A DNA stretch of 64,000 nucleotides from the NCBI GenBank assembly GCA_965649825.1, contig OZ287694.1, positions 929,197 through 993,196 of the forward strand, in the 5' to 3' direction. The position numbers and the translations under genes were made by a program. Positions 5,384 to 31,372 of this stretch are shown here, piece after piece. Every line of letters starts with the position of its first letter. Positions within the stretch are counted from its first letter, which is position 1. The stretch is from Penicillus capitatus. Lineage: Eukaryota > Plantae > Chlorophyta. The notes beneath the pieces were generated by a model, which did no database searches, had not been told where the DNA came from, and saw only the letters and a program-made list of their open reading frames with translations.

Positions 5384-7238
5384 CTCTCTCAAATCTCTCT
5401 GTCAACTTCGTGGTCGTGCCTTGTTATGCAAAGAAAAATAAGATGCGCCGAGTATTTTCTTGTGATTTTTTGCCTCGACTTTGCTTGTCAACGTGTCTGT
5501 TTCGCACAAAGCCCAAACAAAGCTACAAGCGCGAAAGCGCATTCGACTTCAGCGTTTAAAAACTTACTTCGGATGAAGCTTCGGGTCAGCGGACGACAGA
5601 CCAAATAGTATAGAAATTGAGAGGCAGCGACGAGAGAATTGGCTGAGAGATTATGCATGCGATCAAGTCTGACGGACAAAATCTTACTTCATTTGTCGAG
5701 ATCTTTTGTCGTTGAATCTGCAACAAAGCATAGTCGCTCACGACATTCCTCGGGCCACTGCGAGAATAAAGAAGAACCACGGCAAACGCATGTCTTCTTT
5801 TTTTCATGTGTATCAGTGAACGTTGTTCAGATAATGGTTACTGTCGTTATTCTCGTCTCCTATATTACCTACCCAAGCAGTGCGTGGAATGGCATCGACG
5901 CACTCATACGAGGCTGAAAAAGGCGTTCACAGAAGGTAAAGTTTTTTCCATTATCCTCTGAATTGCTTAGTTTGCCACAGCGAGGGTTTAATTTGGCTCT
6001 TTGGAATGGGTCACCGTAGAACGACCAGTAGTAAGCGACGAAACTCGACTTGGTTATACTTCGGACATATAACGCGTGGGACGTTCGGAACTTGGTTCTA
6101 GGCTCGCACTGTAGAAGTACGGGCTTCGCTTCGTTATCACGCGTAACGCGAAAACTGCACGAGAAGGCACGTGGATAGCTATCCTTGCCTCGATTTGTGT
6201 CTTGTTCACAACTCTTTGTACTGTGTCGTACTTTTTGCGTCACATCGACGTGGCGTCAACGACATCAGTTTTTCACCTAAATCCCTTTCTTTCGGGTCTG
6301 AACGTCGTTTTTCAGGACGGACGAGCATTTCTAAGGAGCTCAGTTCGTATTTCGCGTCTGGATAATTGCAACCTGTTAATCCATCTCCTATTCAGTTGCT
6401 CAAGCAGATACAATTAATAAATGGAACACTCTGTCTCTTGCGAGAATGTCCCGATAACAAAGACGAAGCGCGTAACAGAACACCTAAAAGAAGAATCCAA
6501 TGTCCTGCACTGCGAAGAACGGTTCAAACAACCGACCTTCTGCGTGTTGTGAATTCTAGATATTGCCTCGAAAATTAGGGGCGCGGTTCTTTAAGAGACA
6601 CTTTAGTCATGCATAGGATGCAGAAGATCCGAACATCCATTCCATCTAGAGGACTTTCTCTTCTTCCCGTATGTTGATGTTTCCATGTACTTGGCACAGG
6701 ATTGTGTTAGCCGACGACGACACCGTTCGTGGCTTTGATGTGGAGATAGAAACGCGACCGCTTGTGTACACACGGCCAAACTGCACGTTTAAAAACGAGT
6801 AGCCAATCGGTCGCCTTAACCCACGTATTAAAAATACATTCTGTCTTGTTAGTTGCAAGACACGAATCGCGAGTCTTGCGCACAGAAGACGTGGTGCTCA
6901 GTCAGACACGTTATTAACCACATATTGAAGCAAGTGAAAGGAAAGGCAGCTCAAACAACAAAGGAAACTTGTGGAGTGGCTTCGCGTGTGCGAGGCCGTG
7001 TCATCCATTGTGTGGCTCGTAGGTGATCTTCAATTTTTCATTTAACAGGCAGCTGTCTAGCAACTATGCATACGAGGCACAAACACCGCGAAGTTCACAG
7101 TAGAGAAGACACTGCCCTGAATCCCTCCCAAAAATCCCTACTACCCTGCTTCAGTATTTAAACCAACCCCTTCTATCTCTTCAAGGCATTTTCTTGATAC
7201 AAATCGCGAAGTCATTCAGAAAGGTTTCTCTTCCCGTC

Positions 7239-8170
7239 ATGTCGACTTTGATCACCAAACGCTATGTCTTTTGCCTCGTACGTCCCACGAATGCTGCACT
7301 CCTCAGTCTTTATATTCGACTATTCTTTTTTGTCTGTCGCAGATCGTCGTATGGTGTTTTGTTTTATGCGATGGTAAGTGTCCGAAACGTGAAAATCGTT
7401 CTCGTGTCTGAAATAATGTGTTTACGCAGCGTCGCGTGTTGTCAAGAGAAACAATGAGAGAGGCGATGATATCCGCGGAACGACACTAGAAGCCGGATCA
7501 ACGGGAAGAAGACATCTTTTAGGAAACAACAGAGTGTGGCATCTCCCACCTCCTCCCGTTCGCCATCCTGCCGCTGTCGATGCCGTAGCTTCCCCTCCCA
7601 TTCGACCTCCAAGTGGTCCTCCTGCCGCTGTCGATGCCGTAGCGGAGGCGAATGTCACTGCGAAAGCTTCCCCTCCTATTCGACCTCCAAGTGGTCCTCC
7701 TGCCGCTGTCGATGCCGTAGCTTCCCCTCCCATTCGACCTCCAAGTGGTCCTCCTGCAGCTGTCGATGCCGTAGCTTCCCCTCCCATTCGACCTCCAAGT
7801 GGTCCTCCTGCCACTCGTGGAGCCAGTTTCGGTGAGTTCTTCGCCAAATGCCTCGGCAGTTCATCGGGCACTTTCTAGGGAAAGGCGATGGTTGTGTCGT
7901 TCGTTCCAATATTGGTCATTTGTGCGTCGATCCCCCATCATCCTCGACAGCGCTAAAGCAGTACGTCGATGGAGCAGGCTACGGGGACGATGTGGTCCAT
8001 ACGGTGAGCGTTCTCTTTACTCTGGGAGTACCTTTCAAAATTGAAACAAACGGAGTCAAATTCGTGTTGCCCAACATGCCAGTCTGTGAATCTTCCGCAA
8101 ATGTAAGGAAGTCGCTCTCTACAGACACAATGTCTTGAGAACCGTTGTCTAGGTCACGACACGTGGGTAA
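7239..8170 (+). CDS. Secreted Pro-rich protein 1 of an unnamed family (signal peptide, RRHLL motif, SPPIRPPSGPP repeats, novel Cys domain)
   Basis: Spliced model: exons 7239-7277, 7343-7373, 7430-7831, 7879-8102, 8153-8170. All introns are GT-AG, 47-65 nt, and frame-compatible. Protein: MSTLITKRYVFCLIVVWCFVLCDA...GRRHLL...CVVRSNIGHLCVDP...LFTLGVPFKIETNGVKF. Confidence 0.75.
7566..7810 (+). repeat. 54-bp coding minisatellite (PPSGPPAAVDAVASPPIR), about 4.5 copies, one with a 24-bp insertion (EANVTAKA)
   Basis: Near-identical unit cctccaagtggtcctcctgccgctgtcgatgccgtagcttcccctcccattcga, read directly. Confidence 0.9.
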
Positions 8171-9242
8171 GATGAAGTCACGCATTCGAGCTGGACTCTT
8201 TCCAGTGTTTGGTTGGTTGGTCTTGATCGCTCGAATAGCAAACCTAACGAATGCTTACCCCTCTATATTCATGTCCCATGGTGTTTTTTGTTTTTCGGGC
8301 TTTTTCGAAGGAAAGAAAAACTTCGTCTATGATGGATGTTACATGAGATGTGCTTTTTTCCTATTTGTTGCCTTCTCTGCTTTTAGGATGCGACAACGGT
8401 CTGTGTCCTTATCACCTGTTTGGATTTAGAAACAAGCTTTGCATGGAATTAGTCGCAGAATCTGATGAACGATTCTGTGGCGTCTATTGCATTTTTGACT
8501 CTTGAAACCTTGATGATCACGAACTCGAAGAGTTATGTGATGTAAGCAAGGTCTTAGTGGGTTGGCTAAAAAGGCATAGCACGTTAGAAACCGCTCCTGC
8601 TTCTCATGCAAATCCCAAATGGCGTCTTCTTCGCTGACGTCCAACTGCACGTGCTGCAACACGACGAACGCGAATGAGGAAATCTGAGTGAGATGTACCT
8701 AAGCTATTGTCCACAGAACTGTGATCAGGTACTTTTGTTCACGAGGTTACTCATCTGAACGGATGCGATGGTATATGTCAGACCGTTGGGTGCCTCGACG
8801 ATCTTAGTACAGTAAGAGACTCTGTTTTGCTTTGTCCATAAGAGGAGTACATTTTTTGGAGAGACCAACAGCAGAAAACTGGTTCCTCTTTTCAACAACA
8901 TGACTTCCAGTCTGCACGAATTCGCAGATGTCTGCTGACAACAGAGAAGCAAAGTCCATACAGACTAACGAGAGGACCTATCTGTCCAATGCAAACCTAA
9001 GTCCAGTTACTGCCTCTTGTCACCGACCGGCTATTTCCAATGGACGCGTCGAGTGAACGAGCGGCTTTGAAATCTCTGTAAAGTAACGATACAGTGTCCG
9101 TCTGCACCGCTTCGTCGCTCTGTCCGTTGCATTCCCTTGCTATTCAGGTCGAATGCAAAACGCTTTTGTGGTGCGCATTCATCGAATCGTTGTTCTTTCT
9201 GCTTAGAAACAGGCAACGTCTGTCGTACAGACCACGTTATTA

Positions 9243-9306
9243 TTGGAGAAGTGCCCCCATCACGTTGGAGAACTACCCCTTCGCGTTAGAGAAGTGCCCC
9301 GTCGCA
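9243..9306. repeat. Degenerate 21-22 bp tandem repeat, 3 copies, intergenic
   Basis: ttggagaagtgcccccatcacg / ttggagaactaccccttcgcg / ttagagaagtgccccgtcgca. Confidence 0.6.
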
Positions 9307-9628
9307 TTGTGGACCGATCCATAGGAGAGAGGCTGAAATCTAGCGTCTCATGCTCACCGAGGCATCGACTATGCGCCGATCGGTGACGACAACTGCGTCA
9401 AAACTCCCTCGAAGATACAGACGTCCAAGTTCCTCGAGCTTCGCACTGTACACGGTACGCAGAACACACGGTGATGATTTATCCATCGTCCGTCTTGATG
9501 GTCGGCACATTCATTTTAACAAACAAATCCCGACGGAGAACACATATGACATAGCACTTCCACAAACACACCGTTTTCACCGGTTCATCAACAAAAAAAC
9601 GGATTGGTTTCAAACTTAGGTACACCTA

Positions 9629-11230
9629 TCAACAGCCTACCCCATTGACAACCGTCACTATGTGCTTATTTGACATGCCAGGATGATGAATAGCAGTAAA
9701 GCGTTTGTAAAGTTTCGATCCTGTAAAGATTTTGAGCGCCGGGGGTCGGTGCCCCATCCCGTCGAGCACACTTGTCACCAATCGGTAGGAAATGACTGTC
9801 TCCACCCACAAAGCATCCAAATCAAAAAGACGTGAAACAAAGTGCGGCCTTGGCAATCGACTTGTGGCAGCCAGAATAATCGATCCAAAAATACCAAGCT
9901 CCTTTAGCTCTGTCAGATGATTTAAAGTGGCGAGGCGTTCCAGAGCAAACAGTTTATGAAGAGAATTCCCCCCTTGCAGCTTGATCCCGAGAACTTGTAG
10001 TTTTCTGAGCTGCGATAGACCGACAAGAATAGAAGGTATCAAATCGTAGGGAACAGATCCGACGGTCAGTACCGTCAGATGGGGCAGTGTACCGTGGTTC
10101 AGTGAATCTTTCAAAAAACCAATAATCTCGCGAAAATTATTCAGCTTTAGGTGCATTCTCTCGAGCTGCTTCAGCGACGAGAACCAAGAAAAGTTGACCA
10201 CAGTACAAGAGACGAGATTCAATTGCGTAAGAGACGTCAGGTAATTCAGTGTAGCACTGTCGATTTTGAACTTCTTCAATTTGAGTGTCTTCAGTGGGGC
10301 AGGTCCCTGAACGAAGATATCAGCTGTGCCCCGGCGGATTCCTTGATAGTCAATTTCCAATGAATCCAACTTGGACATCAACGGCAAAAAGGCTTGAGGC
10401 TCGACGGTTTGCCCAGGATAGACGGTAAACGAGAGGTGTTTGAGCTTGGAAATATTCGTCAAAGATTCCCAGTCAAATCCACGAGGAGCGTCAGGAAGTT
10501 GCAGAGAGACCAAGGAGGAAAGACCTCGAAGAATACTGGCATAGTACAACGACGTTTCCGTCCATCGGAGATGCAGTGTGTCTAATGATCTCAACATCGA
10601 CAGATCGTCCAGCGTCGCAGGAGTAGACAGTGTGACATCAAGAGTCTGTAACGTAGGTAGGTGCGTCATGATGGAGTACAGTTCAGCGCCGTCACATGTG
10701 ATCGACAGCGCCTTTAAAGACAGACAGGTAAGCTTCGATAGGAAGCTCTTGATACCCAAACCGCATGCGTCGATTCTGAGAGCCGTCAAACATGTGAGAG
10801 GGACAAGGCAGTTGATATCGGCGTCGTCCAGTTCGTTTTCGCTCAGCGACAGTCTTCTCAGCGATGAGAGTTGAGCAATGATGTTGCACAACGGCTCAGA
10901 ATCGTCGACCGTCCAATTGAAGTCTGTCGTGTCCAGATGTGTCATCCTTTGAAACTGAAGCAGGGAATTCGGTTTCACCGACGATAAACCGCTGCGCATG
11001 CGCGGCTGTATGGTCAGAATACTTTCGTTTAGGCGCTGCTTCCAGTGTTTATTCAGTAGTCGCAGCGAAGGACCGTCGCGTTGCCATCGTTTCGTCTTCT
11101 GCAGCTGTTCGACGACGAGGTCGATGGCAAACGCTTCAGCCGAATCCCAGACGCCTGGAAGGAGAGGCTGGACACGTCGTGGCATGGTCACTAGGTCAGG
11201 ATGTGACACAAATTGTATCGCAGACGGCAA
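9629..11230 (-). CDS. Intronless leucine-rich repeat protein (RNI-like LRRs, F-box-like N-terminal segment)
   Basis: 533-aa ORF with repeated LxxLxxLxL motifs (LSSLRRLSLSEN, LPTLQTLDVT, LTSLTQLNLVSC) and SLRLLNKHW near the N-terminus. Confidence 0.8.
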   Translation of the reverse strand: MPSAIQFVSHPDLVTMPRRVQPLLPGVWDSAEAFAIDLVVEQLQKTKRWQRDGPSLRLLNKHWKQRLNESILTIQPRMRSGLSSVKPNSLLQFQRMTHLDTTDFNWTVDDSEPLCNIIAQLSSLRRLSLSENELDDADINCLVPLTCLTALRIDACGLGIKSFLSKLTCLSLKALSITCDGAELYSIMTHLPTLQTLDVTLSTPATLDDLSMLRSLDTLHLRWTETSLYYASILRGLSSLVSLQLPDAPRGFDWESLTNISKLKHLSFTVYPGQTVEPQAFLPLMSKLDSLEIDYQGIRRGTADIFVQGPAPLKTLKLKKFKIDSATLNYLTSLTQLNLVSCTVVNFSWFSSLKQLERMHLKLNNFREIIGFLKDSLNHGTLPHLTVLTVGSVPYDLIPSILVGLSQLRKLQVLGIKLQGGNSLHKLFALERLATLNHLTELKELGIFGSIILAATSRLPRPHFVSRLFDLDALWVETVISYRLVTSVLDGMGHRPPALKIFTGSKLYKRFTAIHHPGMSNKHIVTVVNGVGC

Positions 11231-12912
11231 AGCTGTCTGCGGTCAGCGACAATGCACGGTCACTTCCTTCACATGCAAAGCCTTCAGAATAATGTACAAC
11301 GACTGACCACTCTGACAATGTTACTCGGTGGACAAACCGAACGCCAACTGCTTAAGTGGGTGGAATACAAACAAAAAAGGTGTCGTCGGCAGGAGAACTG
11401 CTCGACGGCGAACACGGTTTCTTGAAAATTGAAAAGGCGAACGGACGGACTGTAGGTTTAGCAAGAAACGACCGAAAATTCAAACGGGAAAGCATTTTTG
11501 TCTAATATAAGAGCTGTACCGGTGAATACATTGGAGAAATCGACGCCTTCTGTGCAGAAACTGAGCTACTGCCAAAATAGATGCAATAAGTGGTTTGCTC
11601 GGCATACGACACCGGACATCAGATCAGCATTGGAACGAAGTTGCGTTGATGATGCGATTCTTTCTTTTCATTTCCATGCTCAACATGTGATCCGAATCTC
11701 AACAGAGAAGTATTGAGACAAGTCGATATCCCTTCCCTTTAGATACCAAATATAGTCAGTCGATTGCAAAGATGTGTTTCGGTGTTTCCATGGATAGCAA
11801 ACGAAGTATGTGGACAGCAAGAAGAGGTGTGTCGTTTCTGAGTTCATTATCAGGATCGAGCAGATGCGATCGTGAACCTTTGTTCACCGTAACATTACAC
11901 TCGAGAGGTGTGTTTTTCAACACTCTCTCCTACTTGACCACCATTCCGATGATGAACCGATGAACAAACCTTACCGCAATTCGTACTGTATCTCTTGTGA
12001 AAAGAAAAGAAATGCAGAATGAGCGAGCGACATAGAGTTACACTGACGGATGTAATTGTCCCCTAAGCAGCGGGACAGGAGCATAGATGATTCGCTTCAA
12101 GGCGAAGAATGCACAGCCAGACGCAAAGCACGTCTGGAAAGAAGGGTGTCCGGCAAAAACAGCTAATGGAACAGACGGTGAGCGACAGGACAGCTCAAAG
12201 TGCTTCATGCATCTAGGGCGGCGACACAATTTCAGAATGCTACTACTGAATTTGCTGCATCCCGTCTATCCTCTCCATTAACCCGTTGACACCCCTGCAT
12301 GGTGACCCGAACAAAGATGATCCGTGGGACATAAACAAGGACCTCGATCATCATAACGAACACAGGGCTCGAGGTATCTTTTGTGTTCTTAATTACGAGT
12401 GCTAGGCAGTGATAACTGCATCTACCAGGTGGCAAATATCTGACGGCACGAATGCCGAGAGTATCATGTTATGCTCCTACATAACTCTCAGCAGATTCAT
12501 AACGCTTCCATCACGTGACCTGTACATCCTGCCACGGCAAAAAAAACCATGACAGCATCCTTAACGAGATGGTCGGAAGCAGAGAAGAACTTCAGAATCT
12601 TAGCGACATTGACGTGTAGCCTTGCAACAGACACGTTTGACGGACGTAAAGACTGGGTCGATTCACTGCCACGTGTCTCGCAGCTTAACGTTGAGCTTCG
12701 TCTAAGATGACAAGACCCTAGTAACGACCCTGCAGTACGGCTTCTTGTGAATTCATAGGTTTTTGGAATCTACGACGAATGGTGCTGCCATTTCGCGGGG
12801 TATTTGAGGATTAGCTAAACATCGCCACGTGTAATGAAAGTTTTTCGCGGCGAAAACAGCCAAAGAAGTTTATCGTCGAACGAGACGAACAAACAACCGT
12901 TCGTTCGCAGTC

Positions 12913-13576
12913 ATGTCGGCTTTCACAAAATACATCTTTGTGAGTCATCTTCCTCCCTCCCGCTGTGCTCTAGACGTTAACTGGCGTGTGGTTGTCCAGG
13001 TCACCGTTTGCTGCCTCGTTCTCTGTAGTGGTAGATTGCAACCAAAAGTGCTTCAGTAGAGAACGGGTTGTGTGTTCGTCTAGCGTCGTCGGATTTTGAG
13101 AGAAGCGCTGCTGCGAATAAAGTTTTCATTAGTGAGACGACACCGAAGACTCTGTCTTTGAACAGACGCTTGCAGCAGAACAGAGAATACTTCGTTCCTT
13201 TTCCTCAAGCGGATCCTGCGTTACCGGTTGTCTCTCCGGTTCCGGGGTGCATTCGTCAGAGCAGTGTTGGATTGTGTATTTTGCCGAGAGCACAGCCGGA
13301 ACAAGTATTGATCTTTGCGGAAGGACAGTTGGATGAGAAAACAGCATTTGTGATCGGCATTCTCCTCGATCTGGGAGTGAATTTTACGATCGAGGATGAC
13401 GGGATCACTTTTAGATTGACCAACCGTGCATCGTGCACTATTTCGACATCCGTAAGTGTCGATTGTCGTCGTTGTATAGCAATGGTAGAGAATTGTATGT
13501 TTAGGATTCGGGCGGCGGCAGTCGCGTTTCTGTCAGAACGACGGCCATTGCAACATCTACCGGTCTCGGTGGTTGA
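12913..13576 (+). CDS. Secreted protein 2 of the unnamed family (signal peptide, RRLQQ motif, novel Cys domain)
   Basis: Exons 12913-12939, 13000-13030, 13084-13451, 13505-13576. Protein: MSAFTKYIFVTVCCLVLCSA...LNRRLQQ...CIRQSSVGLCILP...LLDLGVNFTIEDDGITF. Last exon is less certain. Confidence 0.7.
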
Positions 13577-15806
13577 CTTTGAAGAATTAGAGGGAATCGG
13601 TCAAGTTTACTCTCCACTTCTGTCTCTTTTGGACGGTGTTAAGAAGTGGATTCCATGAACTTCGTCGAAGACTGGGTCGGGTGTTACGATTGGAACTCCT
13701 CGTAATTTCTGAAGGAAGAACCTGCCATCATTATTCTTTTCACATCGAAGTTGTATGAACCAACCATGAAATGACAACACGTTTCGTTGCAGATGTTTGT
13801 ATTTCCATCGCACGCGACTACTTCAATTGATGGTTTCTAGATAGATTATACGGATGATTAAATTGCAGATCAAACGGAGACAGATATTCGTCGATTAAGT
13901 CTTCACGAATCGAGAAAGTAAGTTAGCGATCATATCAATGCAAAGAATTGCCGATCGGTATTCTGACCGAATCGGAAGTGTAAATCACCTATCGAATAGT
14001 CACAGCAAATGGACGATCAAATAGAGGAGTGTAATCTCGATCAATACTCCGATCGAAGCAAAAGGGCGAAATAACATTTGTATGAAGATAGAGGATCGTC
14101 GATCAATCATTTGATAAACAACCATCGAATCGCCGATCGAAACCTCGATTAATACACTGATCAACAAGCAGAGGAAGCAGGAGAAGCAGATTACTGATCA
14201 ACACTCTAATCAAATCTCAAAAGTAAATCATAGATAGATTGATAACGAAGTAAAAAAGAGAAGTAAATGATCAATCGAAAAAATAGGATTTGCACTCGAT
14301 CCAGCAGACGAACCACAGAAATAAGTCATCAATTGAATCGCTCATGGAATCAGGGTTAAACTAAGACAGAAAGCTGCCATACGAGTCTCTGATCGAATCG
14401 GACAAAATTTAATCGAATAAAAACAGAGACGGGCCAATCAAACCTGCAATCGCAATGCAAAGATGAATCGCGGATCAAATCGCTTATCTAGTGAGCATCG
14501 AACTGAGACAGAAAACCACTGATCTTCTTTCGATCAAACTGAAACTGCAAATAGCCGACCATATTACCCTCGAAACGTGCTGATCAGACATACAACGAAA
14601 TCAGTATTCTTAATCGCTCCATTGATCCACCGATCGAATCGTTTAAGTAAATCAGCGGATCGTATCAGACGAGAAAATTCTCGATCGATGCTCTGATCAA
14701 ATCGTCAGAGAGAGTAGACGATCGAATTTAACAGAAGATGACCGATCGAGCGTGAGATCGAACGGCAGAAATGAATCTCTGATCTAAGCGAGATAACGAA
14801 TCTCCAATCGGAACACCGGTTGAAAATCGAAAGGAGAGAAAGTGTATTGCCGATCGATTCACCGAACGCAGCTGGCAGCTTAGATTTGAGTGCCGATCGA
14901 AACGAGACAGAGGATATACTGTCGAGTAGCCGATCATCGAGAGTTTAATCGGGCGAGACCGATTCGACATCGTAAACGATCAAGATGCGGCCGTGCATCC
15001 TTCGTGAAATGATCAGAAATTTCGGATAGGTGTATGGGTTTTGGATGGCTTCCGAATCTCCCGGTTGGTGAAGAGACAGCACGTTTTGTATATTATCCTT
15101 CATGCAGTCGTGTTTACCCACACTTGCAGAGATCGTCGATGAATGATGACAGTTAAAAAGCACCGATCTCGAAACTGAAGAGCAGTAGGTCAGGAGACGG
15201 CTGATCCGGGTGATCGTGTAGCTGTCCCTTTTCCGATGTAAAGCATGATCTGTTTAACAGAATGTCATCAACGATGAGAGATTCGAGCAGTAGTCTAACC
15301 CTCCCGGAGAAGGGACGATAACTTCGATCACACATCCATTGGTCTACATAAGATACTTGCTTACAGTTTTCGCAACAAATCGCAATGACTGGTTCGTTTG
15401 GATAACAATCCACTCCTTGTGGAATCAAAACAACTGTTCCACAAAGGCCATCTCCCAAAAATCTTAATCATTAGCTTAGTCAGAGGAATACGGGAAGCAC
15501 CGTAACAGACTGTTCTATTGGCGATGTTGAAATCCATTGGAACACCATCTCACATCAATCATCAATGCCGATTTGCCTCTCTATCGTGAACACGTACATT
15601 TAAATCGATGATAGCTAAAAACATTCGAATGATCTTAGAGATCAGGTTTGTTTAGAACAACACGCACAAGTAAAGACGAAACGGATCATAATGCCTAATA
15701 CAAAAAACGAGACGCGACAGGAAAATGAAAAGATGACGGTAATAGAATGGAATAATACAGCTAGCTCATATCAAATGGAGTTTGTTTTTGGCATCGCACA
15801 GAATGT

Positions 15807-18800
15807 TTAAACCTGACTGGATGACCCCGGCTGTGTTTGAGGGTTCGGCGCATTACGGTCACGTTTTCCAGCAAGCTTAGCACAAAAACGTGCAACAATT
15901 CTGCTGGAATAGATTCTCAGTACTCGATACATTCCCCAATCAATGGCGGCATCCACTCCATCACACACCAGCACTGCCCTTGCATAGATCTCGATCGATC
16001 GAAAGATCTTGAACATCAGAAGACAAAACAATCCTGATATGGCGAGTGACAAAGAAACGGTGAGCAGCACACGTACGGCATCAGAAAGGCGGCTGTCATT
16101 GAAAAGAACACCAGATGCAAAGGTAAGTTGCGATATGATCAACGATGCTGTTTCATAGGCATTCAAGAAATCGAAGTCCTCTTTGAAGGGTTGACAGGAA
16201 ACATGCATGTAGACTGAACTAGCAAGGACAAAGATGGCAAGAATACTTTGAATGTTTGTGCCTAATGGATAAGAAAAAACGACCACGATGGCCAGCAACG
16301 CTTTCCTAAGCATGACAGTGGATTCCCAGAAAATAAAACGTTCTTTGTAAGCGCGAAACAGAAAACCACATGCTTCAGTGATCCATTGATTATCGTTCGT
16401 TTCCGTGGGATGCAATTTCATTAAGGCATAGGCCAGAGCTGTTGGCAGTCCGAAGGAGACAACGATGACAACAGGCCACCCGACGACTGCCGCAAGAACA
16501 GCATGGGAACCCCTGAAGCATTTAAGAGATGTGTCTACTGCCCAGTAATGAGTAGTGTGATCGATGTCCGTATCGTATGAATCATGCACCTTGATGCAGT
16601 ACAATGTGTTGACTGCCATCTTTGTTACGGAAAGATAAGTGAGGTAAGCCACAGCCAAAGAACTGAGTAGTGCTCTCTTTCCGAAGTACCAGATGCTTTC
16701 GTTGAATTTACGCATTAAGATGATCCACAAAACACTGTAGAATGCTAATATACCCAAGGGGACAGTGATGAATATCGCCGATCGAATGACCGATCGGGGA
16801 GGATCGTAATCCACTCCGAATAGGCAATCGACCGAGAGGACGATACCTTGGGTGGCGGCTCCACCTAAGAAATCTGTCAACGGCACACCTCAGATGTCAA
16901 ATCAGCGCATCGATGACCTTACCTGCAACTAAAAGGAAAGATCTCATCCAGGCAGTCCAGTTGGTGTTGATCATCACAGCAGCTGCAATGACTTGGAGAA
17001 AATTGATCATGATCTACGAAACGATGATCGTCAAACGTCAGTATGCGTTCTGTTTTTAGAATCACTTTGAAAATTTCAACTACGTGTCTCCGCGCGAGAA
17101 TCGGATCGATCGAACTTTGTCGATTGGTTGGCGATGGCGATCGAAGATTGGGATCGATGACATCTGGCGGAACGCGGCCAGTGTGCAGCATCTCCACCAT
17201 CTCGAAGTTCACTGGTACTTCATCTGATTCTCCACCCCTTTGCCGCTTGGACGATTGCTGTGGTTTTAGGCTGATGCGGCTGATCAGGTTTTGATTGATC
17301 TGTCGGGTAGTCAGATTGCTTCTGATGGCAAAGCCGGAGAGAAACAAAAGCACGAGGAGGGACATCACAAAGAGCACGACCGTTTCCCACTTATCATGGC
17401 ACTTATCGCAATCAAAAGACCGCGATCGTCCATATCCTGTTTCACATGACCCGCAGAGAACTCCCGTGTATCCCTACACAAACACATCCTGTTGCCTTAT
17501 CACTATTGGTATGACACATACTTCCTTGCATTGGGCTTGAGAGTATTTTTCGTCGAGCTGCTCGTCAAATTGACAGTCGTGCAAGTCTTGAGTCACGTCC
17601 ATCAGATCTTCTTCCCGTCCATCGAAATCGCACCCTTCTCTCGACACACATCGTTGGATGTGTTTCGCGCAAGGCGTTTTATGCCAATAGCGCCGGATTG
17701 GATGGATAACATTCGTTGTGCAGTTTCCATTGTCCGGACAGGATCGGCAAACGGCAGCATCTGTGTCAAAATTGAACTGAGCGCCGCTGCACGGAACGCA
17801 GAGAGTGCCATTCTCTTGTGAAGATTCTCCCAACTTGCACTGTCGAACTTCGACGTCGACAACCATCGCTGGCAAATCGGAATCGCTAAAATCGATTCGG
17901 ATCTTGTATTGCCCGGGACGCTGAAACCCTGCGATGGGTGGGAAAGCTTTTCGTCTCTCGTTTACCGCCATAATCACTTCTCCAGCAAAAAAATTATCGG
18001 GAGAGTGCATCGATGCGTGAACATACGCCTCGTTTGATCCCAGAGGAGGTCCTTGTCTAAACCCGTCGACGACTTCCAACAGTAATGCTGGTAGTACGTC
18101 GCCGCTTCGGTGATTCTTGACAACAAATCGGTTGTTTTCTACGGGTTCTTCGTCGTCTGTTTTATCGCCGGCTATCATCAATCCGCGTGCGGAATGAGCA
18201 CAGGAGGCGATCATCGGACCATATCGACCGGCTTCGTTCCCGACCCACTCAGGACAGATGTCTTGGGCAGATTTTAATCGATGCGTCGCATCGATTGCAT
18301 CGATCGCGTTCTGAACTGGTGGAGTCTCGGTGTCTTCAGGAAAGCACGAGTAACGAAAGACACTGGGGTCTTTTGTAAAAATGCCACCTCCTGATGTCTT
18401 CGCTGTATTCCGCGAAAACCGACTGCCCATCACCGCAAAGAATGTGCAAGATGCATTTCGTCTTGAGCAACCCCGGGATGCTTCATCGGTGGAGACATAT
18501 ACTCCGCCTACAACACGCATTATCGAAAACTATGATCATATCGAATCGATATCGATTTACCTCCGAGATCGGCGCTGTTATTGGCAAAGGTGCAGTTGTT
18601 GAACTGCATGGCGAGAGACTGGGCTTTACCGGATTCAAAGGCGACCGATCCGCCTTGATTTCCTGCGGAGTTGTCCCTGAGAGAGCAATCCGAACAGAGA
18701 AAGACAGAAGATTCATTGGCCAAAATGCTACCACCGTCCACGGTCGCTCGACACATTTGCGATCGTAGCTCCGATGCCGTTAGATTTGATTCGGAAAGCC

Positions 18801-21800
18801 GGATGGCTCCTCCTGTGGAAGCAGAGCAGTTTAGAAAGGAGGTATCGACGATCGACAGAGTATCGTTCTCTATCGCAGCGATCGATCCACCCGACAGAGA
18901 CGCTCTATCGTTTTCGAAGACGGTTTCAAGTGCACGAAGCGTCGAATTCTTCATCAGGATCGATCCTCCTGAGGATCCGCTGTTCTCGCGAAAACGACAC
19001 TTCGTCACTGTGATGACAGAATCATCGGCCAGAATCGCGCCTCCGTCTTCGATGGCTGAGTTATTTCGAATGACGCTGTCTTGAAGACTGATGCTGGAAT
19101 TGGACACTGCGTACAGGGCGCCACCCTGTTTAGATCGACTGTCTATGATTGACGTATTGTACAGGTTCATTTTGCCCCCGCGTTCGACGGAAAGACTCCC
19201 TCCTCCGTCGATCGCTGTGTTGATCGAAAAGATAACACCTCTGGTGACCAATTCTCCCTCGGAGCAGCGCACGGCACCGCCAACTCTATCTGCACGGTTT
19301 GATGACAGCATTGAATCTTCGACAATGACTCGTCCCGTTCCGTAAACGACCAATCCCCCACCGTTTTTGGCTGTGTTGGATTCCAGTCGGCAGTCCGTCA
19401 AATGCACCACAGAGTTACGTACATAAAAGGCGCCGCCATTCTCGGCAGCATTGCGTTGCACTGTGGAGTTCGACATGTTGAACACAGATTGTTGATCCAC
19501 GACAATTCCTCCTGCCGCTTCATCGCATCTGTTCCCCACGATCGTCAGGTTTCGTGCGACAACCGAAGCTAGGCCAGCAATCTGAATGGCACCACTGGCA
19601 TAGACGGCCGCATTCGATACAAACTCCAGGTCTGTCAGCGTCGCATTGCTACGAAAACAAGCCAAACCGCCCCCGTACTGCCCTGCGCTGTTGTTACCGA
19701 ATCTGCTGCTGCGCGCATCAAGTATACCGTCATCGAAGAAGACACCACCTCCAATTCTAGCTTCATTCGTCGCGATGTAGGCGTCCTTCAGGACGAGTCG
19801 TGATTCACCGGTAGCCAGAATACCACCTCCGTTCTGTGTGACAGAATTGTTCAGAAATGTATTGGAGGGGATTCTGGCTGTTCCATGGTCGATCGCGACA
19901 CCACCTCCTAGGGCGGCATGGTTGGAAGTGTAGTTGCAGGATCTGGAAGTCATATTCGATGTTGATACGAAAATCCCACCTCCTGTTCCACCAGCAGCAT
20001 TCGCCGTCCAATTGACTGCTTGTATGACAACACTGCTGTTCTCAGTGATCTGTGCGCCAGCACCGTTGGATGTTGCTGCATTCGATAGAAAGAGACATCG
20101 CCGGATGCTCAAATCTCTTGATGCACGGCTCGTGAATCCCCCTCCGTACGACGTGGCCGTGTTCGATTCGATTCTTGAGTCGATGATGCGACTGTCAGGT
20201 GCTGTATCTAAGTAGAAAGCGCCGCTATTGATGGCTGTGTTGTTAACCAGTGCCGATCTGCGAAGGATAAGTCTTTCCGATTCAGAGACCCACAGACATC
20301 CGCCACTACCAGACGTATTGTTATGGCATCGAAGTGCAGTTAGCTTTGGTGAAGAGACGCTTCGAATGTGGATCGCTCCTCCAGCATTGGATGCACTGTT
20401 GTTTTCGAAAAGGGAAGCTTCCACCTCGAACGAGCCTCCCTCTGCGAAGATCGCGCCACCATTGCTCCTAACCAGATTGTTGTGAAAGGCACAATGGTCC
20501 ATCGCCAGGACGGTGTCTGCAGTAGCGATGGCTCCCCCGATTTCTGCCACATTCGACACAAAACTGCAATTTGAGATGCTCAGGTGTTCGGTAGAATTCG
20601 ACTGGATAGAAGCTCCAAAACGATGAGCGGAATTGTTGTGAAAATAGCTGTCAGAAATGGCGACTGTCAGAGCGCGATCGAGCACGATGGCAGGATGTCC
20701 ATCGTTTTCGCTAAACCTGCTATCCAGCAGATCCAAGTTTCCCTCCACGATTCGAAGAACAGAGAGTTCATTTGCGTTTGCAGTCAGGCCAACAACAGCA
20801 GAGGTGGATAAGGACGATGCCACAATGAGTGACGCCGGCATTGTACTCTCACCAGTCAACCGCGTGTTTCTTTCTGCCACCACAGCCTGCAGGGTGTTCT
20901 CAGACGACAGGACAGCGAAGCAGGCGTCTCCACAGGCGTTGTCGGAAAAAACGACGTCCACCATCTCAACTGACGAACAGGATGCATTTCCAACGGAAAC
21001 GGCGCTCGTTCCGTTCAATGCGTTCTGTCTGAAGTGCACATGGTGCATGCGGATGATTCCCTCGATGTCCTCCGAATCGCAAGGATCGACTTGAATGATG
21101 GATGCCGCTGTTCTGGTGCCCAGAGTGCACTCTTCGAATACGAGATTGGAGAGCAGTACGTTCCGGGCCCTGAAGAAACCGAGCGCATCGCGCGATCAGA
21201 AAACCAAACGACAGTGCGAATCTTGCTGACCTGATGCGGAAGGCGCTTCCGTTTCTGGGACAGCGGAATCGAACCTTCTGATCTGTCTCGGGAAAAATGC
21301 CGTCTCGATTGTCTGCTCTTTCGACAAAGGAGCTCAGCGTCAAGTTCCATGGAACGTATGCGGTCGATGCCAATCGAGTTTTTCTCTCTGTCTGAAACAA
21401 CACCACATCGTTCTCTCGAGTGCAGGGAAGAATGGCGTTGAGATCATTTGCCACATTCTCCAGGGCCACTTGGTCAACTAGCCACGTCCTCGAGCCATCG
21501 AACAGATCTGAGATCTCAGAGTCCGTGAGACGGCATTGCACATCTAAACAATAGAATCATTTGAAACTGGGACCTCAACAGTCTTTGCGCGACCTGGGTT
21601 GTCAGGGTCGTCCACGTCTGTCTGCTGAAGACGCCTCGACGTTGTACTTCCCTAGAGGGAACACGCGTTATTCGATTGCGTCGCAGAGGCGAGGTCACTT
21701 GTAAGGATTGCACACGGTCTTCTTGGATGCCGTCGGAAGTGGATGGATGTGATGAGACGGAGGCGGCGCCTAAATGCAATCGGAGTCTTAGGCAAAGGGA

Positions 21801-22027
21801 ATAGGAACGACACGCGAAAGCCGAATGTTAGAGACGACGATGATCATCATGGAAAAGCCTGTCGGTTAAGACTCTCCGTGTCGGATTTAACTCCGCCGTA
21901 ACGCAAACCTACCCGATAGCAATTCAGCCGTTCCATGTCGGAAAATGCCTTCTTGGTGGTCCTTTGCGATGACTTTTGGAGAATTGAGGAGTAGACAACT
22001 CAAAGTGAGGACAATAGAAGAGACCAT
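15807..22027 (-). CDS. Giant secreted/membrane protein B, paralog of A: signal peptide, Pmp-like beta-helix, Cys-rich region, multi-pass TM domain
   Basis: ATG 22027 gives MVSSIVLTLSCLLLNSPKVIA. Exons lie in ORFs 20966-21541, 18520-21048, 17474-18520, 16919-17377 and 15807-16886, collinear with gene A (e.g. CTRENDVVL, ICPEW..NEAG.YGP, CVPCSG.Q.NF). The final exon has several hydrophobic helices. Confidence 0.85.
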
Positions 22028-22489
22028 TGTGTGCTTTCGGTGATGTCGTAGGGTGTTTGACTGGATGCTTGACTGTATTCGCATTTTTTTATTCTGCGTG
22101 ACCCAATAGACTTCAGTTCACAGGTACAAAACGCTTCGTGCTTTGTTAAACATTCACGTGTGGATATCGTATGCGTCAAGAACTTACCGATGTTAAGTAG
22201 AAGGCCTTGTGTCATGATGAACGGTTAAGAAGGAATGGTGGAGAAGCCGAGCCGCGGATCGTGTAGCTAGCTGCTTAGAAGGGCCAACGAAAGGTCGTAT
22301 CATTGTAACGTGGACCTTAGGTTCGAGTTCTCTCGAACGCTCACCGAAGTATAGAACGGTTAAGACTGTAGAAAATACGCAACCTACCTGTAGTGCTACG
22401 CGTCCTTCAGACATCTTAGCTTCGTCTGAGTCAAAAACCAACTATCCGCACTGAGGTTTTATAAACAAAATTGGAAACATCACGTTGCC

Positions 22490-23140
22490 GGCGTGTTTCT
22501 ACTATGCGTTCCAACAACGGCGGTAGAATTGCTGACGAACAGTAGACTATTGCCATTTCCAAGCTCGGTTTCGGTGGGTTTATCGAAATTCCTTAATCGG
22601 CTGACAACGTTCAAGAATCGAATAGACAACATCCTTACTCAGATTCCCTCTCTTTGTCATCTTACTCCTTCGGCAACAATTCTGGGTTGCATCGACGATG
22701 AATCCTTGAGAGGATGCAGAAACCCATATCCCTCCAAGTATAAACGCATTCTGAAGATTGTCCAATTGCCACGCTCCAGTCTTTCTCTCAGCCGCGGATC
22801 TGAACAGCGCAAAACCAGTTATTCTCCGCCTGTCTCAACTTGTAGATTGATCGTCAGTCTGTTCGATGCAATACGCGAGTGGCGTCGCCTCTTCAGACTT
22901 AAAGATCTCGAATGTTTTTAGGTATAGTGGACAGGTAGGTATTTCGAATCTCATAGCGCTCAAGTCTCTCAACCTCAAGGATTGTATGTTCTTCATATAT
23001 ACGAAAAACTATGCAGCATTCTGGAGCTCGAAAGCCTTTCTATTCCGTTGCTTGAAAGACATATTTACGCAGATATCGGTTTCCTCCGTTTCTAAGAATG
23101 CTGTGCACATTGGCAGTCGTATCCGACGCTCTCTGTAAAG
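22490..23140 (+). pseudogene. Decayed LRR gene remnant
   Basis: LRR-like fragments in shifting frames with stops: LTQIPSLCHLT, LFRLKDLECF*, GISNLIALKSLNLKDC, LELESLSIPLL. No consistent splice rescue found. Confidence 0.4.
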
Positions 23141-23989
23141 CTTTTGGACATCTCATGTTGCCAGAAGTGATCGGACTGGATATGCTGACACGCACTTACT
23201 TCAGTTGAACAAACTCCCAATCTATTCACCTTGCGATCAATTTAACGCAGCGAGATGTGGTCGATTGCCGCATTTCATCTCGAGTCGACACGATTGCCTA
23301 AGGCTACTGAGCGAAACAAAACGATGAAGTCATCGGAGTATGAGATTTGCAATGCGCCGCGCCGCGCAGTCTCTGCTTTTTGAAACGCGCACGATAGAGA
23401 TAGGCATTAATTAATAGGGTAGCCATGGTGTCTAAACACGAACGGTTTCTGACAAATGTACTGGAGCTTTTTGTTGGACTCTAATCTAGCACACAGAGCA
23501 TCTCTCGCACTTCTTGTAGACCAACGTCGGCGGTCGAGCGCTCTTTGCAGTTTGTCGACCGAGGGCCAGCAGGAGAGTATTATTCTCTTACGTAACTACG
23601 CCGTCTCACGTGCCAGCTATCCATCACATCGTTTCTCCGTTACGGAGAACAGAACTTGACGTCAGACAGACAGGTTTGAAAGAAAGGCGAAAGGCGAGAA
23701 TCCCCGAGACGGAAGAGACACTTTCTCGACAGCTACCCGTTTCTCGACAACTCCGGACGTCCGCGGACTTTTCGAGTAGGCAGCTGGTTGACAGCGACAC
23801 GCCCTGTAATCTCAGCCACGAATTCCGCAAACAGTAGCAGCTGCCTCGAATCTATGCTGGACAAGTCCAATCACTCGTCAGGTATTTAAGCCACGAGGAC
23901 GCCAGCGAACAAAGTGTTTTTGAGGTGCTTTTCATACAACCTCACCCCGTGTCGAATAAGAAGCGAACGCTTTTTTGCGTTTGAACACC

Positions 23990-25054
23990 ATGCAGCCTCC
24001 ACGTTCCAACACCCTCTTTCCTTTATGCGTACATCCTGCTTATCGTTCTCTGCATCAACCTGTCTTCTGACTGGGTATGCTGTGTCGCAGGTTCTGCTTT
24101 GTAGCTTTGCTCTCAGCGCAGGTAACTCTCTACGGAACAATCTTCTCCGTTAACGATGCGTTGTGTAACCCTTCAGCGACACGCACTTTGACGGACAGTT
24201 CCGCAACGGAAGATGGCAAAATTGAGACTGGGACGACGATAGTGGGTAGGCCACAGCGCCAATTGATGCAAGCCAACTATGACAGCGGCTACAGCTGCAG
24301 CACATATCCTTACATATTTATCGCGGACGTGTATTACGCGCCACCAATCGCATATCTCTGCAAAATCAAGTCCAAGAGTGGATTGTGCATGGATCCAATG
24401 GCGAAGCCAGAAGAGATCATCTACTGGTTCCAGAAAACCAACAAGGTGACGATGGTGATCGTGCTGAAAGCTCTGTTCGCTGCCAATGTGCCCTACAAAG
24501 TTGAATACGACGGCATTAGCTTTGGTGTCGTTCCCGATGAGAAAATTCTGCCTGCTGGCGTCTCTCTAAAACCGTACTTGAAAAAGAAATGTATAGTGAA
24601 ACCGCCAGTGGTCACGAAGAATCCTCCGGTGATCTTGGTGAAACCGCCAGTGGTCACGAAGAAGCCTCCGGTCGTCGTCCCATTCAAACCCAAAGCCGTC
24701 GTCCCGGTGAAGTCCAAAGTCGTCCCATTCAAACCGAAAGTCGTCGTCCCGGTGAAACCCAAAGTCGTCCCATTCCAGCCCAAGACCGTTGTCCCGATGA
24801 AACCCAAAGTCGTCCCATTCCAGCCCAAGACCGTCGTCCCGATGAAACCCAAAGTCGTCCCATTCCAGCCCAAGACCGTCGTCCCGATGAAACCCAAAGC
24901 CGTTCCATTCCAGCCCAAAGCCGTTCCATTCCAGCCCAAAGCCGTTCCATTCCAGCCCAAAGCCGTTCCATTCCAGCCCAAAGCCGTTCCATTCCAGCCC
25001 AAAGCCGTTCCATTCCAGCCCAAAGCCGTTCCATTCCAGCCCAAATTTCCATAA
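23990..25054 (+). CDS. Secreted Pro/Val/Lys-rich protein 3 of the unnamed family (signal peptide, RQLMQ motif, novel Cys domain, repetitive extensin-like tail)
   Basis: Exons 23990-24028, 24091-24121, 24177-25054. Protein: MQPPRSNTLFPLCVLLCSFALSA...RPQRQLMQ...CKIKSKSGLCMDP...LFAANVPYKVEYDGISF...(KAVPFQP)7. Confidence 0.8.
24597..25042 (+). repeat. Hierarchical coding tandem repeat: degenerate KPPVV units, then 3 x 45 bp (24761-24895), then 7 x 21 bp (24896-25042)
   Basis: 45-mer aaagtcgtcccattccagcccaagaccg(t/c)cgtcccgatgaaaccc-type unit and exact 21-mer aaagccgttccattccagccc, read directly. No spacers. Confidence 0.95.
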
Positions 25055-25814
25055 GTCTCAATGATCCCAGTAGTTCCAGTAAAAACGGTGAAATTTGGAT
25101 CTTACGAGAAACTGAGACCACCGAATGCTCCAAAATCATGAAACAAAACCTTGTCTAGCTATAGTATTCTATCCAGTATCATTCATTTTTTCTTTGGTGT
25201 TGAAGATCAGGTAGACGAGAATGGTGAATTGTTGCGATGTCGTTTCACTCTAGTGGTTTTGCAAGCGGATCGAGTGAGAATCCATTCAAGAACGAATGAT
25301 CGACAGTTTCCTTTAGATATCTGTAGTAAGACACGCACGTTTGTTAAGAGTTGGGTGGATCAAGACACATTTCGATATACTTGACGACTGCGCCGTTCGT
25401 ACATAACGAGTTGATTCGTACGATGACATTTCACTAAGGACATATGCGTCTCAGTGCAGACAGGACGATACCACACCAGCCTCTCCCCATTCACGCAAAC
25501 AACCCGATGCAAGGTGTTCCTAGGAAACGCATTAGATCACTGTCGGGATAAAAGAACGACGTCAGATATCGTATGGAAAAGAAAGGTGCGTCGTTGATGG
25601 AAGATAGACAACGACGTCAATGGCGCATAGTATATTCTCGATTGGATCCGTGCCAGCAGTTCGCCCTTCCTTCACATTCAAAGGTTCTCGGCTCGAATCA
25701 TTTTTTCGTTTGGCAGACAAGACGTGAATTCCACACCATGAGTTGAGATGCAGCAATTTCGGCATCTGTTTCAGGTACATTGCACGTATTCGAACCGCCA
25801 CGTAGCTGAGGACT

Positions 25815-28337: not shown

Positions 28338-28771
28338 CGGATGAGAAAAGAACGCTGTTTTGCTGCCAAGTGGCGGAGGAATGTAAGAAGCGGAAATGCA
28401 AATTGATGCTCGTCTGCAGACTGCATCTCTGTTAAGGCAACTCTTGATTGCTGGCAAACACCTTGCAAATCAAGGGGCACATTACTCTATTGTGTGTTGT
28501 CTTCTATAGACTGTCGTCTCCTATGGTTCTTTCTGACAGCCATTTCACTTAATTGACTGTGGCTCGATCTTCTCTCAGATTCGCTCGCACGATCGAACGA
28601 TACCGAAGGCAATCATGATGACAACTGCCATGAACAAAAACTTAATCATCGAAATGCGAATGCACTTCTTTGAAGGATTGTTGTTCATACGTACGTCTCT
28701 ATGCATAGATGAATGTCAGCGGCTTATCGACAGAAGGGGAACCACTGCCGCATTAGCAATGAAAGGGATTC

Positions 28772-29733
28772 CTACTGATCTTCCTTCTCAATCCAGACGT
28801 AGCAGACAAAAGAATTCTTGTCGTAGAAGCTGCGCTTCACTGTCCCACCTGCTTTGCGAACCAGTTCTTTAACAGCATCGAAGCTTCTCTTTTTCGTCGA
28901 ATACACAACCATTCTCTCTCCCTCTTCGAAAACATATTCCTTGTCACCCAATTTGACCACTTGACGCGATTTTGCAACGACATTGTGTTCGACTTGCGTT
29001 TCCTCGGGATTATATCCAGGTTTGTACTCGTAAGCACTCTTGTCGAAATTCGCTCCGTATTCTTTGTTCATCACATCGCAGATGCTTAGCATAAATTCTG
29101 TGAACTTGGGAGTGCTATAGGCCACGACATTTGTTTCGGGATTCTGGTTCGTGTCGAAAGACGCAAGCAATACCCCACCTTCTCCCAGAGCATCGATTGT
29201 GTATCTCAGGAGATCAATCGCCGCTAGAAGACACAAAACACAGATAACGAGAATCACACAAAAGTACACTCTTTACCGTCATCCTGGAAACAGCCGACCA
29301 TGCTGCAGGCTAGAAGTCCAAATCGCGTGTTTCCTGGCGGAAGCTGCATCGGCTTGAATACGTCGGCGACAAAACGATGGAATTTGAGGTCAGGGAACCT
29401 TGTTTTGAAGTTATCCTCCGCCACTTTCAAGACCTCTTTATCAACGTCAACGGCGACGAAAGATTCCAGATCTTCAAACGCCTCGAGAAGGGGAATGGAT
29501 TTGTCGCACAGACCGGCACAGAATTCCACAAACGTGCGGTTCTTTCCTGCAAGCTCAGCGATGTGCGCTGCATTGTCGGCGAGAATCGAGAGATCGTTGT
29601 AGTGCACGTAGAAAGCTTGTTCTTTGCTCCCGGCGTCAAAGAGCGCTCCCGAGTCGTCGTTGTATAGAAACGTGTGGTTCAATTTCTTCGGCGTGCTGGA
29701 GAGACCTTCCTGAGCAATGGATAAGGAATTCAT
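28772..29733 (-). CDS. EgtD/EasF-family (Methyltransf_33) SAM-dependent N-methyltransferase, divergent, copy 1 (~302 aa)
   Basis: Exons 29733-29277 and 29223-28772 (53-nt GT-AG intron). Collinear with EgtD: KKLNHTFLY..ALFD..YVHYNDLSIL..TFVEFCAG..DK..DVDKEVL..GGVLL.SFD..NKEY.ANFD..EEGERM. Confidence 0.8.
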
Positions 29734-31013: not shown

Positions 31014-31372
31014 CTCGCCGACGGACACAACACGCTGCGACAATGCAAATAATCGATAGCTTGTGATCGTGAATGCGGCCTTTAGCGAAGGTTACGACCA
31101 TTAAATGCCTCGGAAGATGATCATCCTGATGCGCGCAGCACAGCAGAATCATCCACTGCATTCGTACGTCGAGAGTCCTTTCAGTAAGGCGGTGATCGCG
31201 AGTCGACCTATGAGAGCAATGTGCATCGAGATACAAGCCTCTGTCTGCATCTGCAGAAGGTAAGACAACAAACACACATCCAAGTGAACGCCTCAGGGAT
31301 CACTTAATCTTGTAGATCCATGTCTGCTCGTGTCCATTTCGAAAAGAAGTCAGTTGACGAGGCGCTTTCGAT

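Follow-up and report, generated by a model that had tools for sequence, protein, structure and literature searches.

Three linked genes for predicted secreted pro-proteins sharing a new, narrowly distributed domain in a Caulerpa-related green alga

A number of secreted plant pro-proteins, among them RALF23, PROSCOOP12, GLV/CLEL6 and the group-2 pectin methylesterases, begin with a signal peptide and a pro-segment, followed shortly before the mature part by an RxLx/RxxL site at which subtilases of the S1P/SBT6.1 type process them. The RxLx/RxxL motif is canonical for S1P, AtS1P/SBT6.1 and SBT3.5, with cleavage after RRIL in RALF23 and after RRLM in PROSCOOP12 (PMC13082318), and RRLL is the optimal site of SKI-1/S1P (PMC8310232). 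A second described type of secreted protein, represented by the pherophorins of volvocine algae and by extensin/proline-rich protein (PRP) chimeras, joins a Pro-rich repeat rod, in which the number of repeats varies freely, to a small globular domain. Here, three genes (copies 1, 2 and 3) are described from a stretch of 64,000 nucleotides (nt; ~49% G+C) of contig OZ287694.1, the whole of which is referred to as the window. Their overall architecture is of a known kind, with likeness to both types. Their shared domain of 55–57 amino acids (aa) is new and very narrowly distributed, no relative having been detected by sequence or by predicted structure.

The reading preferred here, with a probability of roughly 0.45, is that of a lineage-restricted family of three secreted pro-proteins in a Caulerpa-related, Bryopsidales-like siphonous green alga, which would act as processed modular proteins of the extracellular matrix or the surface and carry a new binding knob. 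The host was placed by an importin-alpha gene in the window (44050–45720, reverse strand), the product of which is 53–57% identical to the importin-alpha of many green algae and land plants and 80% identical to that of Caulerpa lentillifera (EukProt). This indicates a siphonous, Bryopsidales-like ulvophyte close to Caulerpa and agrees with the siphonous host assumed earlier. The siphonous genera Caulerpa, Bryopsis, Halimeda and Ostreobium form metre-scale single cells, for which the wall and the quick sealing of wounds are vital. The extracellular proteins of these algae are almost uncharacterised, and a small domain without relatives is a candidate for a new extracellular module.

Gene structure and the shared domain

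An initial reading of the window (the first-pass annotation) had proposed an unnamed family of three dispersed genes, and the genes were read at the coordinates that it gave.

7239–8170, forward strand: copy 1, 237 aa; exons 7239–7277, 7343–7373, 7430–7831, 7879–8102 and 8153–8170 (stop included)
12913–13576, forward strand: copy 2, 165 aa; exons 12913–12939, 13000–13030, 13084–13451 and 13505–13576
23990–25054, forward strand: copy 3, 315 aa; exons 23990–24028, 24091–24121 and 24177–25054

The three genes translate cleanly and all introns are of the GT-AG type, with lengths of 47–65 nt (65, 56, 47 and 50 nt in copy 1). A phase-0 exon 1 of 39 nt (copy 1), 27 nt (copy 2) or 39 nt (copy 3) is followed in each by a hydrophobic exon of 31 nt, after which a phase-1 intron splits an Ala codon (G/CG).

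7343–7373, forward strand: 31-nt exon 2 of copy 1, IVVWCFVLCD plus G, the first base of the Ala codon; hydrophobic core of the predicted signal peptide
13000–13030, forward strand: 31-nt exon 2 of copy 2, VTVCCLVLCS plus G
24091–24121, forward strand: 31-nt exon 2 of copy 3, VLLCSFALSA plus G

For comparison, a 30-kb contig, ctg329124, which holds loci L002 and L006, was aligned to positions 3.1–29.7 kb of the window; it belongs to the same metagenome assembly (ERZ25074695) as the window, itself a section of the 1.84-Mb contig ctg340529. Two syntenic loci, L004 and L005, were located on two Mb-scale contigs of a second metagenome assembly (ERZ26696514), with flanks ~80–82% identical to the window. 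Copies 1 to 3, the haplotig copies and the second-assembly orthologues made up nine gene models. The ATG, the exon 1 length of 39, 27 or 39 nt, the 31-nt exon 2 and the G/CG junction were kept in all nine; the split module of the predicted signal peptide described at first (short exon 1, 31-nt exon 2, phase-1 intron) was upheld. For copy 3, the exons of 39 and 31 nt were kept in both the haplotig allele (L006) and the orthologue (L005).

No in-frame ATG precedes the domain in exon 3 of copies 1 and 2, and spliced upstream exons are therefore required to supply a start codon. An unspliced version of copy 3, a single open reading frame (ORF) from the ATG at 24077, was rejected, as this ATG reads ATA in the haplotig allele and the orthologue and the upstream ATG with its 39-nt exon is conserved. 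When both strands of the window were scanned for 31-nt hydrophobic exons between AG and GT[AG], the three copies were recovered together with one further candidate (31029–31059, reverse strand), which sits in an unrelated gene and was discarded. Upstream of the genes, the only shared promoter element found was a TATA-like GTATTT[AG]A; a stricter pattern matched once and was uninformative.

The three proteins share the motif C-x3-[ST]-x2-G-x(0,1)-LC-x2-P ... L-x4-V-x-[FY]-x-[IV]-[ED]-x-[DN]-G-[IV]-x-F.

7893–8063, forward strand: domain of copy 1 (aa 163–219), with a third Cys after the domain at 8085
13248–13412, forward strand: domain of copy 2 (aa 75–129), with a third Cys after the domain at 13434
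24359–24523, forward strand: domain of copy 3 (aa 85–139)

The motif given by the first-pass annotation stood in its overall pattern and was corrected in its details: the spacing is L-x4-V and not L-x3-V, and among the nine sequences the Ser can be Thr and the Glu can be Asp. In the nine-sequence alignment C, G, L-C, P, L, V, G and F are invariant, with Ser/Thr and Glu/Asp nearly so. The domain is thus real, and its earlier description as a Cys domain overstated the cysteine content, with only two invariant Cys. A third Cys lies 8–23 residues past the domain in most copies, and the mature parts of copies 1, 2 and 3 contain 3, 3 and 4 Cys, including the invariant two. The isoelectric point (pI) of the domain differs widely, from 4.1 in copy 2 through about 6 in copy 1 to 8–9.3 in copy 3.

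By BLASTP of the domain regions, copy 1 was linked to copy 3 (E = 2e-7) and copy 2 to copy 3 (E = 8e-10). Copies 1 and 2 did not detect each other directly and are joined only through copy 3. A hidden Markov model (HMM) of the three domains, run against the six-frame translation of the window, returned copies 1, 2 and 3 only (E about 1e-35), the next best match having an E-value of 0.47. At the sequence level the similarity of the three domains is beyond chance, and the BLASTP links, the HMM result and the lack of a Pfam match bear out the unnamed three-copy family.

Constraint, haplotype divergence and distribution

Between copy 2 and its haplotig allele, two 1-nt indels and one substitution were found, all in predicted introns, and the single exonic change is synonymous. 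The last exon of copy 2 showed conservation at the protein level between the two organisms only after the predicted intron was removed. The terminal micro-exon of copy 1 (VTTRG and stop) carries two changes in the haplotig allele, both synonymous. Between haplotypes, the four introns of copy 1 are 66%, 68%, 75% and 85% identical and its domain exon 82%, so that divergence was faster in three of these introns than in the coding exon. The copy 1 haplotig allele is intact, with the acceptor of intron 3 moved 6 nt downstream (L002 4673/4729). This intron (7831/7879 in the window) is labile: it is 47 nt long in the window, 55 nt long in the haplotig and missing from the L004 orthologue, where the ORF is continuous (9900–10423).

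The ratio of nonsynonymous to synonymous substitution rates (dN/dS) over the domain was 0.23–0.31 for copy 1 (three pairs) and 0.17 for copy 2 against its orthologue, copy 2 being the most conserved of the three. With domain ratios of 0.17–0.31, copies 1 and 2 are clearly constrained coding sequence under purifying selection. For copy 3, the domain dN/dS was 0.69–0.82 (three pairs), and the alleles differ by 12 nonsynonymous and no synonymous changes in the region of the signal peptide and pro-segment. Either relaxed or diversifying selection would fit this pattern.

Divergence between ctg329124 and the window was found to be mosaic, with blocks 3000–8200 and 17000–25400 set against blocks 8200–16600 and 25400–29400. 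The two are 99–100% identical over copy 2, a leucine-rich repeat (LRR) gene and positions 25.4–29.4 kb, as opposed to 72–90% over copy 1 and a 1386-aa PMP-like ORF. Over copy 3 and an 842-aa PMP-like ORF the identity is mostly 78–94%, with two 400-nt intervals at 96–99%. In its divergent blocks ctg329124 is almost as far from the window as is the organism of the second assembly. This could be due to balancing selection, to homeologous subgenomes or to the presence of a second strain.

Searches outside these loci were negative. With Pfam-A (hmmscan), no family was matched by the full proteins at E≤1 or by seven domain sequences at E≤10, and a sequence-profile search of the PDB gave only a chance OXA beta-lactamase (E = 0.87). 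Word-indexed searches of 5.8 billion proteins, with profiles of three and seven sequences, returned the window genes, the haplotig and the second assembly only. An exhaustive HMMER search of 1.84 billion representatives at 50% identity gave five true matches, all from those four contigs; two other hits, P0126 and P0127, were rejected as spurious repeat proteins. Two scans of JGI metagenome contigs yielded no relative, and no Caulerpa protein was matched, though the searched collection holds a Caulerpa lentillifera EukProt protein. Judged by public data, the family comprises three genes at a single ~18-kb locus of one small clade. Among protists and algae, lineages with poor sampling often have orphan secreted families. 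Given evidence at the level of DNA, the family is for now a well-defined curiosity and not a breakthrough.

Putative processing, predicted fold and proposed function

In all nine models, a basic n-region, a hydrophobic core of 10–14 residues and small residues at −3/−1 were recognised by eye. The junction Ala occupies position −1 of an (A/S/C)-x-A motif, the typical signal-peptidase site, exactly at the junction of exons 2 and 3. The N-termini of copies 1 to 3 are predicted to be cleavable signal peptides, with a cleavage site that coincides with the phase-1 intron. Further downstream, an R-x-L was found at +26/+27 from the junction Ala in eight of eight models checked.

7510–7521, forward strand: RHLL of copy 1 (aa 51–54), putative site of pro-protein cleavage at +27 from the junction Ala
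13164–13175, forward strand: RRLQ of copy 2 (aa 47–50), R-x-L-x at +27
24257–24268, forward strand: RQLM of copy 3 (aa 51–54), R-x-L-x at +27

The alleles and orthologues in this check read RRLL, RHLQ, RRLL and RRLM, and the copy 3 haplotig allele, modelled later, reads RRLM with R at position 5 (RRLMR). These are the sole conserved columns among the three paralogous pro-segments, and from residue frequencies we estimate the chance of an R-x-L at equal offset in two further paralogues at ~1e-4 or less. The motif had been noted before as RR/RQ-L-L/Q and as typical of algal secreted proteins; the conserved basic-Leu site was retained and refined to R-x-L, and no support was found for the second part. 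The sequences RHLL, RRLQ, RQLM, RRLL, RRLM and RHLQ fit the S1P/SBT6.1 consensus, RRLM being the site of PROSCOOP12 (PMC13082318), and the R-x-L-x may well be a subtilase site of this type. The family differs from the plant pro-proteins in its mature part, which shows no similarity to theirs in sequence or fold, in that its cleavage is predicted, and in its host, an ulvophyte alga. The clean motif suggests that ulvophytes, too, use the S1P-type pro-protein pathway of land plants.

A very improbable alternative is that the R-x-L is an export or sorting signal like PEXEL or TEXEL, cut after the Leu by an aspartic protease of the endoplasmic reticulum (ER) or Golgi and not by a subtilase. PEXEL (RxLxE/Q/D) and TEXEL (RRLxx) both belong to apicomplexan systems. 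The position of the site, ~27 residues past the signal peptide, does recall the R-x-L that apicomplexan exported proteins carry ~20–30 residues past theirs. An RxLxQ/D form occurs in copies 2 and 3 and two orthologues, position 5 being Q or D in four of the eight sequences checked. The host, however, is a green alga, and position 5 is G, A or L in the other half of the sequences, where PEXEL would have E, Q or D, and R in the copy 3 haplotig allele. The green-alga host and the presence of Q/D at only half of the sites make this signal the less likely reading.

The mature region of copy 2 was modelled with AlphaFold2 on an alignment of six rows, with a mean predicted local distance difference test score (pLDDT) of 81.8 and core blocks at 86–93. 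The model consists of an N-terminal strand (residues 3–8), a hairpin framed by the invariant pair of Cys, two helices (41–51 and 54–65) and two further strands (69–72 and 76–81). The N-terminal strand begins two residues past the putative R-x-L-x cut and joins the fold. In the model of copy 3 the core blocks (pLDDT 84–88) have the same order of hairpin, helix, helix, strand and strand. Copies 2 and 3 are predicted to share one fold, a Cys-flanked beta-hairpin, two helices and a beta-hairpin, in which the two invariant Cys probably form a disulfide. The third Cys of copy 2 lies in a disordered tail of the model (pLDDT <50), consistent with a free thiol.

No significant structural neighbour was found with Foldseek, either for the copy 2 model in the PDB (best E = 1.9, template modelling (TM) score ≤0.33) and in BFVD (best E = 0.36) or for the copy 3 model in the PDB (best E = 2.1). 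The strands, two helices, two strands and the size of the domain recall POTRA (beta-alpha-alpha-beta-beta) and LysM (beta-alpha-alpha-beta), which are both extracytoplasmic binding modules. No POTRA or LysM protein was among the Foldseek matches listed, however, and Pfam matched neither, so that the likeness is a lead from topology only.

The first-pass annotation had also seen a resemblance to the FliF/YscJ ring-building motif and taken it as a hint of oligomerisation. The hypothesis built on this, a domain that drives the assembly of large oligomeric rings, can now be practically dismissed. The suggestion drew on the pattern hydrophobic-x-V-P-[FY]-x-[IV]-E-x-[DN]-G, recognised by eye, and both are small alpha/beta domains in which a Gly turn comes after a hydrophobic-x-hydrophobic strand. 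Yet neither YscJ_FliF nor any other Pfam family was matched even at E≤10, and the models of copies 2 and 3 run hairpin, alpha, alpha, beta, beta, as against alpha-beta-beta-alpha-beta in the ring-building motif. For either model, no flagellar or injectisome ring protein was among the best 50 Foldseek PDB matches listed (best E = 1.9, TM score ≤0.33). With a differing order of elements and no ring protein listed, the suggestion is not supported; the family is moreover eukaryotic and predicted to be secreted, and profile, topology and Foldseek results together effectively refute the link.

Pro-rich repeats precede the domain in copy 1, follow it in copy 3 and are nearly absent from copy 2, as first described.

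7546–7809, forward strand: Pro-rich spacer of copy 1, 18-aa (54-nt) tandem units ASPPIRPPSGPPAAVDAV, ahead of the domain
24596–25051, forward strand: C-terminal Pro/Lys/Val-rich tandem repeats of copy 3, KPPVVTKKPP; KPKVVPFQPKTVVPM; KAVPFQP

With Tandem Repeats Finder, a repeat of period 54 with 96% matches was delimited at 7665–7812 in copy 1, and periods of 45 and 21 were found in copy 3, with units of the KPPVV/KPKVVPFQP type after the domain. Copy number and sequence of the repeats vary between haplotypes: the haplotig allele of copy 1 lacks the array, and in that of copy 3 it is ~100 residues shorter. The SPP/PPxGPP motifs of copy 1 and the KPPVV/KPKVVP motifs of copy 3 are in the style of PRPs. 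In contrast to pherophorins and extensins, no pherophorin or extensin Pfam family was matched, the globular domain is unrelated, and the rod is present in copies 1 and 3 only, copy 2 having almost no Pro-rich spacer.

The order of parts would accordingly read: signal peptide, a pro-segment of fixed length (~30 aa) ending in R-x-L-x, a variable and often Pro-rich spacer, the globular domain of 55–57 aa and usually one more Cys; the spacer lies on either side of the domain or is almost missing. In the reading as matrix or surface proteins, the protein would enter the ER and lose its signal peptide, a Golgi subtilase of the S1P/SBT6.1 type would cut at R-x-L-x and release the pro-segment, and the mature protein would be exported. 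The Pro-rich modules of copies 1 and 3 would serve as spacers of the kind found in hydroxyproline-rich or proline-rich wall proteins, and the globular domain as a knob that binds or cross-links within the wall or the extracellular matrix. The extra Cys, probably unpaired, would be free for an intermolecular disulfide. Of the functions named as plausible in the first-pass annotation, those in the cell wall, in a wound plug or as a ligand are all candidates.

Several points weigh against this reading. The evidence for the splicing of copies 1 to 3 is comparative throughout, and a collection of 15 billion proteins held no transcript-derived, spliced protein of the family. Cleavage is predicted from a motif of four residues, and the predicted fold depends on an alignment of six sequences. 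Copy 2, with barely any Pro-rich spacer, fits a structural wall role poorly.

For copy 2 a ligand-like role is a serious alternative. It would make the proteins precursors of secreted signalling ligands comparable to phytocytokines, in which the pro-segment is cut at R-x-L-x and the disulfide-stabilised domain is sensed by a receptor, as for RALF and PROSCOOP, with the LRR gene as candidate partner. The succession of signal peptide, pro-segment, RxLx and a small Cys-containing mature part parallels that of RALF23 and PROSCOOP12 (PMC13082318). Copy 2 is almost free of repeats, has a dN/dS of 0.17 and is nearly identical between haplotypes, and an LRR-containing ORF (9629–11230, reverse strand) lies between copies 1 and 2 in both organisms. 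For the family as a whole a ligand function is nevertheless unlikely. Mature parts of 115–261 aa exceed typical peptide ligands, copies 1 and 3 have long repeats like those of wall proteins, and there is no Pfam similarity to RALF or another known ligand family; RALF peptides also have a YISY motif and four conserved Cys, as against two invariant Cys here. The N-terminus of the LRR ORF has no obvious signal peptide or receptor architecture, and adjacency of genes means little in eukaryotes. Somewhat less probable again are fast-evolving surface proteins of recognition or defence (lectin-like, antimicrobial or self/non-self), with a diversity maintained by balancing or diversifying selection. 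They would account for the 72–90% identical haplotype blocks around copies 1 and 3 and the adjacent PMP-like beta-helix genes, as against 99–100% in the intervening DNA including copy 2. The 12 nonsynonymous and no synonymous differences between copy 3 alleles, the domain dN/dS of 0.69–0.82 and the strong spread in pI among the paralogous domains (4.1, about 6 and 8–9.3) would follow as well. But the domains of copies 1 and 2 are under clear purifying selection (0.17–0.31), no known lectin or antimicrobial family was matched, the raised ratio of copy 3 is equally explained by relaxed constraint, and what is taken as the haplotig may represent a homeologue or another strain and not an allele.

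An extended form of the recognition hypothesis, in which an extracellular fold that is new and occurs in a single lineage of siphonous green algae belongs to a self/non-self, gamete-recognition or microbe-recognition locus, with copies 1 and 3 and the PMP-like genes in ancient hyperdivergent blocks under balancing selection, appears improbable. That the genes are non-functional, as chance ORFs, pseudogenes or repeat-derived sequence, is hardly credible. The family is indeed absent from all other genomes and metagenomes searched and its genes are known from DNA only, but their reading frames are unbroken in two organisms and three haplotype-level copies, neither exon sizes nor splice sites have changed, the copy 1 introns are 66–85% identical between haplotypes next to a domain exon at 82%, and dN/dS is well below 1 in copies 1 and 2.

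Neighbouring genes

Copies 1 and 3 are flanked by very large ORFs with beta-helix repeats of the Chlam_PMP/NosD type, and the order PMP, copy 1, LRR, copy 2, PMP, copy 3 is conserved in the second assembly.

294–4454, reverse strand: PMP-type ORF
9629–11230, reverse strand: LRR-containing ORF (LRR_8/LRR_14) between copies 1 and 2 in both organisms, its start without an obvious signal peptide
15807–16886, reverse strand: PMP-type ORF of 359 aa
17474–18520, reverse strand: PMP-type ORF of 348 aa
18520–21048, reverse strand: PMP-type ORF of 842 aa
52862–53737, forward strand: TMEM192-family protein
54272–56446, reverse strand: ORF of 724 aa, SAM_decarbox fused to ornithine decarboxylase
57408–58910, reverse strand: M24 Xaa-Pro aminopeptidase, interrupted by one short intron

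The PMP-type ORFs of 842, 348 and 359 aa adjoin one another and possibly form a single gene; the 359-aa ORF has hydrophobic stretches with the look of membrane spans. In a scan of the window with Rfam, no match was obtained. In the 724-aa ORF, SAM_decarbox (aa 46–262) precedes Orn_Arg_deC_N and the C-terminal domain of ornithine decarboxylase (aa 358–693). A brief literature search found no direct report of such a fusion in a green alga. The same order of S-adenosylmethionine decarboxylase and ornithine decarboxylase is that of the bifunctional Plasmodium enzyme and is unexpected in a green alga. Importin-alpha, the TMEM192-family protein and the M24 aminopeptidase are encoded by housekeeping genes, which anchor the window taxonomically. 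The spacing of genes in the window is compact, as in small genomes of the Caulerpa type.

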